NCBI GenBank assembly: GCA_048013815.1
Contig: CM106585.1
Location: 9,424,001 to 9,488,000, forward strand
DNA length: 64,000 nucleotides
Direction: 5' to 3'
Source of the DNA: Setoptus koraiensis
Lineage: Eukaryota; Animalia; Arthropoda
Shown: in pieces, positions 25,954 to 31,312 of the stretch
Layout of the letters: the number at the start of each line of letters is the position of its first letter
Numbering within the stretch: position 1 is the stretch's first letter
Position numbers and translations under genes: made by a program
Notes under the pieces: model-generated
What the model was told of the DNA's origin: nothing
Seen by the model: the letters and a program-made list of their open reading frames with translations, nothing else
Databases searched by the model: none

Positions 25954-26547
25954 TGTCCAAATGCTGTCTACTAAACTAATTCAATAGTTGGAATGACGAT
26001 GATGTTGTATTGAAAAGGCTGCCGGACGATACATTCAATATTATACAAGCTGAGACATTCATTTCGAAGAAATGCATATGATTTGGAAATCAATTCGTAC
26101 CTTTGTTTGGCCTATGATGCTAGTTTCGGAGCTTGGCAAGATACTCAAACACAACAATAACGAAAAATTCCAACTCGGGCAACGTAATTTATCAAGCGCG
26201 TGATGTAGATAAAGACTAAACAGTATCACGCGCAATTATTTATTTGTCTGTTCAATCGGCAATGCATGCAGATAGTCTGACCTAACTTCAAATCTATTTA
26301 CAATGTACAATAAAAATCCTCTGAAATTATAAGGCAATTAGTCGCTGTAAGAACCTTGGTTGGATAATAAAACAACAATCAATGATATAGTATGTTGAAT
26401 AAACAAACTCGATTTTTGAACTGCGCGCTTGCCAACAAAGTACACCCTATATACTTTTTTGGTCGCTGTCCTTCGTCGCAAATCTTGACCACGTGATAAA
26501 CACCAAAATTTACATGTTTGCCGTAATCTCAACAGCCGGATCAAAAA

Positions 26548-27478
26548 ATGCCTTCCGATGACAATGGTAGTGCTGAAGGTGATAGATCTCATCTTCGACA
26601 CGAGCAGCCGGCTTCCACGTTTCGGATAATGGTTGCGGGAGCCGTTGCAGGACTTCTTGTAGACACATCATTATTCCCCATAGACACCATCAAATCTCGA
26701 GCGCAGAGCCAAGCAGGCCTATTCGCGTCAGGGGGTTTCAGAAATATCTACAGAGGGCTCCCATCAATTCTTGTCGGGTCCATACCTAATGGTAAGGATG
26801 CGTCTCTCTATGTATACAGTGCCTCTTGACGATCCTAACAATTTATCTTTCCCATCATTATCCCTTATAGCCGCCTTGTTTTTCATCACGTATGAAACAT
26901 TTAAAGAACATCTCGGACTTTGGAATAAGAGTTATACCAGTGTAAATAATTCGCTGGCTGCTTCTATTGGAGAGCTGGTGGCTTGCGGAGTACGTGTCCC
27001 TTATGAAGTTGTTAAATTGAGAGCTCAAACTTCTTCCGTGTCTCTGAAAACTTTAAGTTTATTCAAGAAGATATTCGCGAGTGAGGGCGTGCCAGGTATC
27101 TACAGAGGCTATGTAAGCACTATTTCTAGAGAGATACCTTTCAGTATGATTCAGTATCCTATATGGGAAGGATTAAGAGAGAGGCACATGAACCACCATG
27201 GCAAGCCAGTTACCGCACTTGAATCTGCCTATTATGGATCTTTAGCTGGAGGAATAGCTGCTTTCATCACAACCCCCCTGGACGTCGCTAAAACCAGAAT
27301 CATGTTGGCTGATAGTTCAGATCGATTAGCTTCGGGTAATGTTGGCTATGCACTGAAACAAATATACTTCGAAAAAGGTGTTCTTGGCCTCTTTGCTGGT
27401 GCCTTAGCAAGAATGTTTTGGATCTCAGCCGGTGGTGCGATTTATTTAGGATCATACGAGAAAGTATTGACATTATGA
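26548..27478 (+). CDS. SLC25A26: Mitochondrial S-adenosylmethionine carrier
   Basis: Exons 26548-26791 (G|GTAAGG) and 26871-27478. Carrier signatures FPIDTIKSR, VPYEVVKLRAQ, TPLDVAKTRIML; also REIPFSMIQYPIWE. Confidence 0.93.
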
Positions 27479-29037
27479 TAATCAACATATGATGGGTACT
27501 CCGGGTCGGGTTGAGATTGTTGAATTTCAGGAGTGGGAGGTGGAGCGGGCGGTATATCTTCAGAAGAGTAAATAGGTTCTTCTCTACCTAAGTCAGAATC
27601 ATCATGAGTTGAGGTGGCTGGACATCTTTGATAATAGTTATTGCCGTAGGTTGAGGAGGCGCTAGTCGATGTGCCAGGCATCAAGCGACCGTAAGTTGAT
27701 TCTTGATAGATATATGTTGGAGTCGGAGGCAACGGCGGTACTAGGTTATTGTGTGGTATCATGATATTGGCAAACGGTTGTTCTGCGTGTCTGGATTCAT
27801 CATCTGAAGCAAGGATACCGTTCATGCCTACACCAGTACCACTCTTTTTGCTCTCAGAATCTTCCCTGCATGAGCGTATCGTGACAACTCCAATAAATGT
27901 TAGTATTGACACGCAAATCACAACCACCTTTATATAGTCAAAACCAGTTTGTTCTAACGGAGGTTCTGGGATTTGAGGTATTGGAGTGACTTGAGGGCAT
28001 CTAGTGGGACCCTCATCGGTGCCATCTTCACAATCCACTATTCCATTGCACAATAAATGCCTCGATAAGCATTTTTCTATGCATAGGAAAGTTTTACCGT
28101 CATCACAAGGGCAGTTTGATTCATCTTCCTCTGTCTCTTTGCAATCGACTGTTCCATCACACTTAAATTTGTGATCGATGCAGATTGGTTTAGATCTATT
28201 AGGATATTTACAATCAAATTGAGTGTCGCTACATTTTGCAAATTCGTCATATGAGTTCTTATTAAAATTAAGAGTAGCTGGCAAATCTCCGGGTAAAGTT
28301 GTGTGTGTTGAATTCTGATTGACTTGATTGTGGTCGCCGACGCACGTTGCATCTTGTTGCGGTGTGGGCAAATCTTCGCATTTCCATTTGATTAACATAG
28401 CCCCATTGTTAGTTGATTCATTCGTTGACTTACTAGTTAATTGTTCCAAATATTTTCCACATTGATTCTGTACCGATAAACAAAGATGTTTACAGGGCAA
28501 AAGAATACTAGGCGCCATTACCGTGCACTGGGGAGCAAACAATGCACACAGGAATAATTTTACGTCTTCGCTTTGTTTAAATAACCATGCAAATTTGTTT
28601 AACTCCGCAACGGCTGACTCTTGAGTTGTGTGATTAAAATGATTTTTGAATGGTCTAATAGTCATGTTCCATCCAACACCATTACATAATGGAACAAGCA
28701 TGGGATCACATGAACCTTCAGGTGGCTGGTTCACTTTTTCAAGTTCAGAGGCCATTTTCCATTCACTTTGAGGATTGAGCGATACTAATTCAAATGAACT
28801 AGAGTTAGTGCTGGCTGATATCACATGATTATTTGTAACTATTTCTACTTGTGTTGGTCGTCTCACGGCACCGTTGTCGTCGTTTATTGGCTGAGTGGCC
28901 AATGCAAACTGTTGAGCATTACATTGTATAATTGTTGTGTATAAAAGAGTTTCATGCAACAGTGTAGCGATAATAAATAAATAATAACAATGATATAAAA
29001 TCTGACGGCATGCTTTCATCTCTTGAGTTAGGAACAT
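27442..29037 (-). CDS. Type I membrane protein: signal peptide, Frizzled CRD, 2 LDLa repeats, TM, Pro/Tyr/Ser-rich tail; single exon
   Basis: First ATG at 29037 (alternative 29019). CRD ~28710-28342 (CDPMLVPLC..NMT..NHFNH..FLCALFAPQC..PCKHLC); LDLa repeats with CDGTVDC..EDESNC and CNGIVDCEDGTDE; TM YIKVVVICVSILTFIGVVTI. Confidence 0.88.
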   Translation of the reverse strand: MFLTQEMKACRQILYHCYYLFIIATLLHETLLYTTIIQCNAQQFALATQPINDDNGAVRRPTQVEIVTNNHVISASTNSSSFELVSLNPQSEWKMASELEKVNQPPEGSCDPMLVPLCNGVGWNMTIRPFKNHFNHTTQESAVAELNKFAWLFKQSEDVKLFLCALFAPQCTVMAPSILLPCKHLCLSVQNQCGKYLEQLTSKSTNESTNNGAMLIKWKCEDLPTPQQDATCVGDHNQVNQNSTHTTLPGDLPATLNFNKNSYDEFAKCSDTQFDCKYPNRSKPICIDHKFKCDGTVDCKETEEDESNCPCDDGKTFLCIEKCLSRHLLCNGIVDCEDGTDEGPTRCPQVTPIPQIPEPPLEQTGFDYIKVVVICVSILTFIGVVTIRSCREDSESKKSGTGVGMNGILASDDESRHAEQPFANIMIPHNNLVPPLPPTPTYIYQESTYGRLMPGTSTSASSTYGNNYYQRCPATSTHDDSDLGREEPIYSSEDIPPAPPPTPEIQQSQPDPEYPSYVDYHNVNTFSYDPK

Positions 29038-29911
29038 CTTTGTTAAGCGTCGTAATAAGCTCGACTGAGAATTAATTCGCACCAACAATGTGACATCTTA
29101 TCCATTAATTACAATGATAGTGGCGATGGCGAGAGTTAATAGTGAGTATGGCGTGTGATAAAAATACAAACAATAGTGATTATCATTGTGACATCCGTAA
29201 ATTGATGGTATGTAACAACAAGTAAATAAAACAGTTGATATTGAAGATGGACATTTGTTGTGATGCTGAATGTTATTGGTGCATTTCGTCCATATTTCAA
29301 CGGTAGCCTATAGAAAGCTATTGAACACGGAATGTGCAATGTGCCGTGGACGCTTTCTCTGTGCTTGGATCAATACACACATTTGATGACAGAAATGACC
29401 AACAAGATGATGCCACACCAATACCAAACAAACAAAACAGTTTCCGACTGGGCGTGTCACTTTCAGTAAAACCAACCGCGCGGGTATATGCAGTAAGGCT
29501 GGTGCAGCGGGCGTAGAAAATACTGGCACAACCGCGACCGCGGACATACGCGGACACTAGTGATTGGCGCACCCGCAGCCGGCATGTTTTCTTGAGGCGC
29601 ATTCCGCTGTTGCTTTGTGCGCTGCTTTCGTGTGCTACCGTGTGCAACAGTGATCGATAGAATAAGAGCGTTCGCGAACCGCCAGCGAGCCTTACCGTAT
29701 TACTTCAAATTCGAACAAATTAAGGGGACGCAGACGTTTATTTTCGAGACAATTTTAATGTTTTATAGGATATATAGATACGAGACATTGTTGACATTGT
29801 TTTGTTTTTTTAGAGAAAATAAAACTAGTGACGCAAAATTTAGCTGATTATTGATTTTTTCATCGGCCTCTTGGTCGCAGAGGATGTGAAGGTGAAATTG
29901 TTGGATAAAGC

Positions 29912-30181
29912 TTATGAGACCAGAGTTTTCTCTTGTTCGATCTGCGTCAAACTAGGTAGAGTATTCTTTTCTTCCGTCTGAGCGGGCTTGAGTTGCTCTT
30001 TTCTGAATGATTCGATATTTTGGATGACCTGTTGTTGTTGTTTCTCATTCTTTATCTGCTCTGCTGATGGTAGAACAATTTTTTCCTCTGTTTGTGCATG
30101 CTTGAGACTGTGGTCAGCCTCGAGCTCGGCCTTGAGGCCTCCGTCGATTTTGGGTAGTTCCTCTTTGCTTGGCGAAGACAT
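29912..30181 (-). CDS. Beta-thymosin/WH2 actin-monomer-binding protein with two repeats (ciboulot-like), 89 aa
   Basis: Repeats LKHAQTEEKIVLPSAEQIKNEK and LKPAQTEEKNTLPSLTQIEQEK. Confidence 0.92.
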   Translation of the reverse strand: MSSPSKEELPKIDGGLKAELEADHSLKHAQTEEKIVLPSAEQIKNEKQQQQVIQNIESFRKEQLKPAQTEEKNTLPSLTQIEQEKTLVS

Positions 30182-31312
30182 TTTTGGTTGCTTGATAATA
30201 TGGATTGGCGAGGTCTCTTCGATATCTAGGGATACTCGTTTGGTTGTTGTCGTTGCTGGTATGTATTGTTGGTCGGATTGAAATTAAATCTAATGTTTGA
30301 CACTAGTGCTGATACTGATGATAAAGATAATATGGTAAAGTAATTCTTGTGTACTCCAAAAAATACTGTGTGCTGTTGAGGAAGACGAAATTACAAAAGC
30401 AACTAAACTTCAATCTCTCTCTCTCTCTCGCTCTCGCAGACAGGCCAAACTCACAATTCTTCTTTCCCCCGTCCACCGCTAAAAAGTTGACTGTCTGTCC
30501 CAAGTTGTACGATTGTCTAGTTTGTGTGTGCGTTTCATGTTTGAGTCCGGTTAAGTCGTTGAAGCACACAGTTGAGTGACTCAAGAGAAGCAATAACAAC
30601 AACAAGTTGGCTGATATTGATGCTGCTGCTGCTGCTGCAGTTGCTGTTCAATTGTTTCTACATAATAATCCACCTCATAATATAGGGTGAGCACATCAAA
30701 TGGTGAAGCCATTAGCCACAACTGTGCTGTTCGATGCACATTTCGCTCTGTGCTTCACGCTGTTGGCTTAGTTTGTTCATGGCAGTGTTTGCTCAAATGC
30801 ACATTCTGTGCCCTGGTAGTGTCAACCTTTTTTGGACAACAACACACTGACGAAAGCATGCAACGTAATCCATTCAAAATGGACATTTGCTCTGCCCATC
30901 CTATATGATGATGCCGGTGGTTGTTGTGTCAGCAACTATCACACAGATGATTATGGCAAAAGCAACAGCAAAAAGGACTGCATCAACATCTGCGATAGCA
31001 ATCATCCTATCAGCCTATCTCTGGCGTACAATTTCTTCACTGGCCACTAGCTAGTTTTTTGTGCCTGTTAATGCAACACGGTGACATGTAATCCCGAGTT
31101 CTCTCCATGGTCGATAGGTGTCGCATGCCCATAAAACAATGGTATAGTGTGTGACTTTAGAGAGATAGCAATCGTTGCAGCGAACATTGCACAGAACGTA
31201 ATCCTTCGGAGTTGAAATTATCACACAAAATAACACAGGAAGAATGGGAGGAATTCTTCGAATGAATTGATTCGAGCTCTTTCTTTCGAAATTCGAATCG
31301 TTCTTTTCCCAT

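Follow-up and report, generated by a model that had tools for sequence, protein, structure and literature searches.

The receptor gene and its locus

The subject of this article is a receptor gene carried in a 64,000-nucleotide stretch of DNA of the arthropod Setoptus koraiensis (NCBI GenBank assembly GCA_048013815.1, contig CM106585.1, positions 9,424,001 to 9,488,000 of the forward strand), which in its whole length is called the window and is numbered from its first letter. The gene occupies 27442-29037 on the minus strand and encodes a protein in which a Frizzled-type cysteine-rich domain (CRD) and two low-density lipoprotein receptor class A (LDLa) repeats are joined through one transmembrane (TM) helix to a tail with four conserved linear motifs. 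It represents a receptor family that is undescribed to date and has been found only in mite or mite-like assemblies so far, and its tail is conserved and clearly functional. Most likely the protein would serve as an endocytic receptor for a CRD ligand, and this reading is weighed below against three others.

The interval 27442-29037 forms one unbroken, intron-less open reading frame (ORF) of 531 codons and a stop, which a base-by-base check of the coordinates places at 27444-27442. The gene is flanked by a thymosin-beta gene and by a convergent mitochondrial-carrier gene on the plus strand, and on a Logan contig from another sample (L001) a protein of 72% identity (P0001) is encoded between the same two neighbors and uses the same start ATG. 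Because the neighbors and the convergent overlap with the carrier gene are the same, P0001 is the orthologue from a related species. The window gene is a genuine gene, as its intact and conserved ORF, the purifying selection acting on it and its conservation across the family attest, and its features are not due to chance, since the full architecture, together with a PPP(T/S)P site in the tail, recurs in P0001 and in 35 more distant relatives. The features of the gene outside the tail are as follows.

27442..29037, minus strand: complete single-exon coding sequence; ORF collinear with orthologue P0001 from end to end
28915..29037, minus strand: N-terminal hydrophobic leader (residues 1-41), presumed signal peptide; from the sequence, with an AlphaFold2 helix at residues 2-47, and kept in P0001
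28339..28710, minus strand: Frizzled-type CRD (residues 110-233) with 9 of the 10 canonical Cys; Pfam Fz, PDB, Foldseek, model confidence ~90
28111..28236, minus strand: LDLa repeat 1 (residues 268-309); Pfam PF00057, six Cys
27997..28107, minus strand: LDLa repeat 2 (residues 311-347) with a canonical CNGxxDCxDGTDE calcium cage; second PF00057 stretch
27874..27942, minus strand: TM helix (residues 366-388), then RSCR; Kyte-Doolittle maximum at 367-390, AlphaFold2 helix at 366-396
27441..27446, minus strand: AATAAA overlapping the stop codon, a likely poly(A) signal judged by its sequence

At their coding 3' ends the receptor and carrier genes overlap by 37 bp in the window (27442-27478), and at the orthologous locus the same convergent overlap measures 28 bp. 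The upstream neighbor at 29915-30181, on the minus strand, is a small two-repeat thymosin-beta gene (Pfam, 2e-19) that is kept upstream in the orthologous locus. DNA runs labelled 'organism D' (among X5-X16) hold exactly half of the 31-mers of the locus (26400-30300), and this label is probably that of a host plant carrying a related mite. Three large raw RNA runs under that label gave zero reads anywhere in the same interval, its three genes included, which makes them no test of transcription.

Ectodomain and membrane topology

Pfam recognizes an Fz domain at residues 110-225 (57.7 bits, with a cut-off of 32.1; E 2e-15) and two copies of Ldl_recept_a (E 7.5e-9), at residues 268-309 and ~311-347 with six Cys in each, and it finds these two domain types only, so that a preliminary description of this DNA was right to deny the protein the protease domain of corin and the beta-propellers of LRP6. 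In an AlphaFold2 model built with a 24-sequence family alignment, the predicted local distance difference test (pLDDT) score is ~90 in the CRD and ~85 in the LDLa repeats, a helix spans residues 366-396, and nearly all of the tail scores below 50. Pfam, hydrophobicity and the model thus agree on the order of domains that had been proposed from the letters (signal peptide, CRD, two LDLa repeats, one TM helix and a tail then put at ~145 residues). Of these elements, the signal peptide is predicted from the N-terminal hydrophobic stretch alone, and what stands of it is a leader that P0001 has kept. With a hydrophobic leader in front and disulfide-rich domains outside, the protein is read as a type I receptor with a cytoplasmic tail of 143 residues.

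In sequence, the CRD is nearest among PDB entries to the CRDs of FZD7, FZD2 and FZD1 (2e-15), followed by those of other Frizzleds and of sFRP3. When the predicted structure is compared with Swiss-Prot by Foldseek, the top fold matches are seven-transmembrane Frizzleds, including MOM-5 and Drosophila Fz, and human corin appears at rank 14, with residues 47-342 collinear with corin 396-649 over the CRD and LDLa region. Because the CRD is closest to Frizzled CRDs in both sequence and fold, a Wnt-type ligand is the most economical guess. In the window copy the third canonical Cys is replaced by S156 (AGC, 28570-28572), leaving nine Cys where P0001, which keeps this residue, has ten, and a distal insertion amounts to ~8 residues relative to P0001 and ~14-15 residues relative to other members of the family. 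From the disulfide pattern of Frizzled CRDs, C193 is presumably the partner of the lost Cys and would then be left unpaired in the window protein. Both Cys of this presumed pair are missing from another family member, P0091.

A family of relatives

An exhaustive HMMER search returned 952 proteins at E values up to 0.001, the majority of which match only a CRD or an LDLa repeat; a distinct subset aligns without a break from the CRD through the tail as far as residue ~504. The highest-scoring matches (P0002, P0003, P0008, P0009, P0013, P0018, P0019 and P0027) were rejected as relatives on account of their different architecture. These proteins carry 3-13 tandem Fz CRDs and no other Pfam domain, and they head the list of matches because the domain is repeated. 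The family was enlarged by means of a local hidden Markov model of the tail and a further database search that started from the consensus-like member P0064, and it now counts at least 37 sequences (the window protein, P0001 and the 35 more distant relatives) of 330-620 residues, all of them with a CRD, two LDLa repeats, a TM helix and a tail. A database search with a 10-sequence alignment gave nothing beyond the close orthologue, and a metagenome scan with tail patterns recovered only the contigs of P0064 itself. One relative sits on a 'plant metagenome' contig.

Just one member bears a name, UniRef A0A6G1S8T4 from the acariform, eriophyoid mite Aceria tosichella, which has been called 'Atrial natriuretic peptide-converting enzyme' automatically; the remaining 36 of the 37 come from unannotated Sequence Read Archive or metagenome assemblies. 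Where genomic contigs are available for the relatives, the gene is a single ORF amid compactly packed eukaryotic genes. Searches of the literature turned up no account of a mite family with the order CRD-LDLa-TM. A maximum-likelihood tree groups the window protein with P0001 on a branch of great length (3.8 substitutions per site), so that they may be either a fast-evolving orthologue or an old paralogue of the others, and most of the remaining tree is without resolution.

Conserved motifs of the cytoplasmic tail

The tail is predicted to be disordered, and its conserved residues fall into four short blocks with spacers of varying length between them, to which the window protein and its orthologue add elements of their own.

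27445..27873, minus strand: cytoplasmic tail (residues 389-531), disordered, with 20 Pro, 18 Ser, 11 Thr and 11 Tyr; pLDDT mostly <50, composition
27715..27738, minus strand: PPLPPTPT (residues 434-441), restricted to the window protein and its close orthologue; base-by-base check, family alignment
27700..27714, minus strand: Block 1, YIYQE (residues 442-446); consensus P-[IL]-Y-Q-E-P, Y444 nearly invariant, E446 highly conserved
27682..27693, minus strand: Block 2, YGRL (residues 449-452), a YxxPhi signal of AP2 type; consensus (S)DYER[LVI]N, Y449 invariant
27646..27675, minus strand: Block 3, GTSTSASSTY (residues 455-464); consensus GG[Y]SGASS[VI]Y, with G455, S461, S462 and Y464 nearly invariant
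27529..27552, minus strand: Block 4, PPAPPPTP (residues 496-503); consensus (E)PPAAPPP(T/S)P(AP), P499 and P500 invariant
27472..27480, minus strand: C-terminal YHN (residues 520-522), a YxN motif; YxN follows PPPTP in 20 of the 37 members

The preliminary description had drawn attention to the stretches GTSTSASSTYG, CPATSTHDDSD and YSSEDIPPAPPPTP, all of which are found in the tail, and had located PPLPPTPT (27738-27715) and PPPTP (27543-27529) correctly. It had compared the whole to the tail of LRP5/6 or Arrow, and had allowed that the comparison would fall if PPP(S/T)P were not conserved in orthologues. A motif of the form [AP]PPP[TS][PR] occurs near the C-terminus in every one of the 37 members, as PPP(T/S)P in 34 and as PPPTR in the other three; the Thr or Ser is never replaced, and P496, P501, T502 and P503 are each at or above 90% in the family alignment. 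On this point, the observation is stronger than the author of that description could know. The two further resemblances to LRP6 did not hold up, as both CPATSTHDDSD, likened to LRP6 motif B, and the upstream PPLPPTP, taken for an additional motif of this kind, occur in no member other than the window protein and P0001.

The surroundings of the PPPTP motif are more variable. At the +2 position of a PPPSPxS motif, Ser or Thr stands in 2 of the 37 members and Pro in 20 (the window protein reads PPPTPEI), and four residues beyond the Thr a Ser or Thr is present in 15, which is a GSK3-type spacing. Roughly 13 members have [RK]xxPxxP right before the motif, and a Tyr lies downstream of it in 35; P0001 has YDN in place of YHN. 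Upstream lies a conserved SGASS / STSASST block, embedded in the Tyr-rich region, and the spacer between it and PPPTP ranges from 10 to ~60 residues across the family. Block 2 lies ~60 residues from the membrane and provides a conserved Y-x-x-[LIVMF] in an accessible, disordered cytoplasmic segment. By inspection, it takes the form Y-x-R-[LVI] in ~33 of 37 members; an automatic regular expression counted 26 of 35, with some rows mis-registered. Readings of the tail as ITAM, PPxY, NPxY, PTAP or acidic-dileucine signals were rejected after examination of the alignment by eye, as these are not conserved.

Searches for similar tails elsewhere returned little. The tail profile gave nothing meaningful against PDB and Pfam, neither of which is known to contain an LRP tail, and feature searches of the ESM Atlas with two tails retrieved no LRP5/6 cluster, only generic membrane adaptors with Tyr and Pro motifs at low scores. 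The nearest tails by this measure include those of SCIMP, LIME1, A36R and UL135, with scores of 0.57-0.68 that are within the range of noise.

Selection across the protein

Constraint is strongest in the TM helix and the tail core. When the window gene is compared with P0001, the ratio of nonsynonymous to synonymous substitution rates (dN/dS) is 0.047 for the stalk and TM helix (residues 348-388) and 0.067 for the tail core (residues 433-503), against 0.20 in the LDLa repeats, 0.28 in the CRD and 0.48 in the N-terminal region, so that the ectodomain evolves several-fold faster than the tail. The synonymous rate of the tail core is a normal 0.57. Nor is the constraint on the core a product of the 37-bp overlap with the carrier gene, because the overlap stops short of the core motifs.

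Proposed function and alternatives

The protein is most likely, with a probability of about 0.5, a CRD receptor taken up by AP2-dependent endocytosis and bearing phospho-regulated docking sites. At the cell surface the CRD would capture its ligand, either a lipid-modified one of Wnt type or another CRD ligand, and the YxRPhi signal of Block 2, a near copy of the AP2 mu2 ligand of TGN38, would draw the receptor into clathrin-coated pits. YxRPhi is the form favored by AP2 mu2, and a role for Block 2 as an endocytic sorting signal is the best-supported single assignment that the tail motifs suggest. The Ser/Tyr cluster and the invariant Thr-Pro site may act as docking sites regulated by phosphorylation; the Thr-Pro of PPPTP would suit proline-directed kinases in general, whether MAPK, CDK or a GSK3 aided by a +4 primer, and it would also suit a phospho-dependent reader of WW type. 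The outcome would be an endocytic receptor or modulator that binds Wnt and removes or relocates the ligand, and that may also signal. Such a protein would not be a straightforward fusion of Frizzled and LRP6.

Several points weigh against this proposal. All of the predicted functions of the tail rest on short motifs; YxxPhi motifs are common, and the Tyr in the phospho-cluster might just as well serve SH2 binding. The window protein, on its very long branch of the family tree, has YGRL rather than YERL, and the endocytic proposal leaves the invariant Thr of PPPTP unexplained. In the ectodomain, the lost CRD Cys and the distal insertion may have altered ligand binding. For transcription of the window gene there is a single contig of 228 nt over its 3' end (27396-27623), the sole contig coverage, which derives from a run of uncertain type ('RNA?') and may belong to the convergent carrier gene.

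A tail that works in the manner of LRP6 or Arrow is unlikely, yet it is the alternative that survives best. Here the Ser cluster and the Thr of PPPTP, phosphorylated by GSK3, CK1 or proline-directed kinases, would recruit and inhibit Axin-GSK3, and a single chain would either join Wnt binding by the CRD with activation of beta-catenin or titrate Axin as a modulator. The near-universal PPP(T/S)P with its never-replaced Thr/Ser speaks for it, as do the Frizzled kind of CRD, the juxtamembrane LDLa repeats as in LRP5/6, the minority of members with a +4 Ser/Thr, and the conserved Ser-rich block upstream, which recalls the LRP6 'miniC' (PMC2603313); an AP2-type Tyr motif is present as well, and LRP6 signaling needs one too (PMC12095580). 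The Arrow-like tail that had been suggested is supported in part only. In outline the order of Ser cluster and PPP(T/S)P is shared, but there is one conserved motif rather than five, PPLPPTP and CPATSTHDDSD being lineage-specific. The +2 Ser/Thr is all but missing from the family, a spacer of variable length replaces the contiguous PPPSPAT element of LRP6, and the Tyr motifs are placed upstream rather than downstream. Neither ESM Atlas tail search yielded an LRP5/6 cluster, and the motif equally suits any proline-directed kinase or a WW/SH3 ligand.

Somewhat less likely again is a phosphotyrosine scaffold, in which the 11 Tyr of the tail (in YQEP, YxRL, SSxY and YxN contexts) would be substrates of a tyrosine kinase, non-receptor or associated, and once phosphorylated would attract SH2/SH3 adaptors, of Drk/Grb2 type at YxN and others at YxxP/YxxL, with PPAPPPTP as an SH3/WW ligand. 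The protein would then be analogous to the CRD receptors of Ror/MuSK type, with its kinase supplied in trans. Such a scaffold would account for the invariance or near-invariance of Y444, Y449 and Y464, for the Tyr that follows PPPTP in almost all members and the YxN in 20, and for the basic SH3-type pattern before the motif in about a third of them. The closest Atlas tails are Tyr-motif adaptors, yet their scores do not rise above noise; some members lack YxN or the basic residue of the SH3 motif, SH3 binding leaves the invariant Thr unexplained, and the kinase partner is hypothetical, with none known.

Least probable, and doubtful at best, is a receptor for non-Wnt cargo, in which the CRD, whose fold binds lipids and sterols, would together with the LDLa repeats take up a ligand of lipid, lipoprotein or protease-inhibitor type, the tail would serve trafficking only and the gene would be unrelated to Wnt signaling: LDLa repeats with YxxPhi are hallmarks of endocytic LDLR-type receptors, and the rapid evolution of the ectodomain, the lost CRD Cys and the distal insertion fit as well, but Smoothened and other CRDs are further from this CRD than the genuine Wnt-binding ones of Frizzleds, and four invariant motifs plus an invariant Thr-Pro would be superfluous for pure trafficking.

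Significance

On a conservative reading, the window gene reveals an unrecognized and strongly constrained receptor family in mites, among them major crop pests, that is now mislabelled as a protease (corin). The family would add a new class to the few single-pass receptors that bear a CRD (Ror, MuSK, corin and MFRP), and its four conserved linear motifs offer a clean set for the identification of partners. A bolder proposition, which is improbable, is that acariform mites have evolved a one-chain canonical Wnt receptor in which the CRD is wired to Axin/GSK3 by a minimal tail ('Ser cluster + single PPPTP + AP2 motif'). If it were true, Wnt could stabilize beta-catenin without the Frizzled-LRP6 pair. 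Synthetic fusions of Frizzled with LRP6/Arrow are classic tools, and uniting the functions of both receptors in this way suffices to start Wnt signaling; a natural single chain with CRD and PPP(T/S)P would put to the test what minimum of the LRP6 tail is required.

Comparison with known systems

With LRP5, LRP6 and Arrow, the mite receptor shares its type I topology, juxtamembrane LDLa repeats and a disordered tail with an AP2-type Tyr motif, in which a Ser-rich stretch, here embedded in a Tyr-rich block, precedes PPP(S/T)P. It differs from them in the lack of YWTD propellers and EGF modules and in the possession of its own Frizzled-type CRD. The conserved PIYQEP and GGYSGASSVY blocks are not known to have counterparts in LRP5/6. 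The LRP6 tail holds five PPPSPxS motifs, each phosphorylated on both Ser/Thr residues, with a Ser/Thr-rich cluster upstream; the 'miniC', comprising this cluster and the first motif, is sufficient for signaling, and singly phosphorylated PPPpSP peptides inhibit GSK3 (PMC2603313). Axin and GSK3 bind one contiguous element of 28 residues (T1477-Y1504) centred on motif A, and tandem AP2-binding Tyr motifs just downstream of it are essential for signaling (PMC12095580). The mite family departs from this plan in its single PPP(T/S)P, its scarcity of +2 Ser/Thr (2/37), its variable spacer and the location of its Tyr motifs upstream of PPP(T/S)P.

Frizzleds (class F) provide the closest CRDs, those of FZD7/2/1, MOM-5 and Drosophila Fz, and the domain of the mite receptor is of the Fz type; the receptor has one TM helix instead of seven, no PF01534 match and no KTxxxW motif for binding Dishevelled. 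Corin, the ANP-converting enzyme, resembles it in that LDLa repeats follow directly upon a CRD. It is a type II protein whose two CRDs are accompanied by eight LDLa repeats, an SRCR domain and a protease domain of trypsin type, whereas the mite receptor has the opposite orientation, an unrelated tail and no SRCR or Trypsin match in Pfam. MFRP is likewise a single-pass membrane protein with LDLa repeats and an Fz CRD. It is of type II, with CUB domains, a C-terminal CRD and a short N-terminal cytoplasmic part, and the mite receptor differs in having no CUB match in Pfam.

For the sorting signal, the closest parallel is the AP2 mu2 ligand of TGN38, DYQRLN, the peptide used in crystallizing the open AP2 complex (PMC3655264). 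The likeness to TGN38 and to YxxPhi cargo such as the transferrin receptor is one of motif without homology, and the window protein itself reads STYGRLM; at the level of the family, (S)DYERLN equals DYQRLN at five of six positions and, as in TGN38, lies far from the membrane in a disordered tail.

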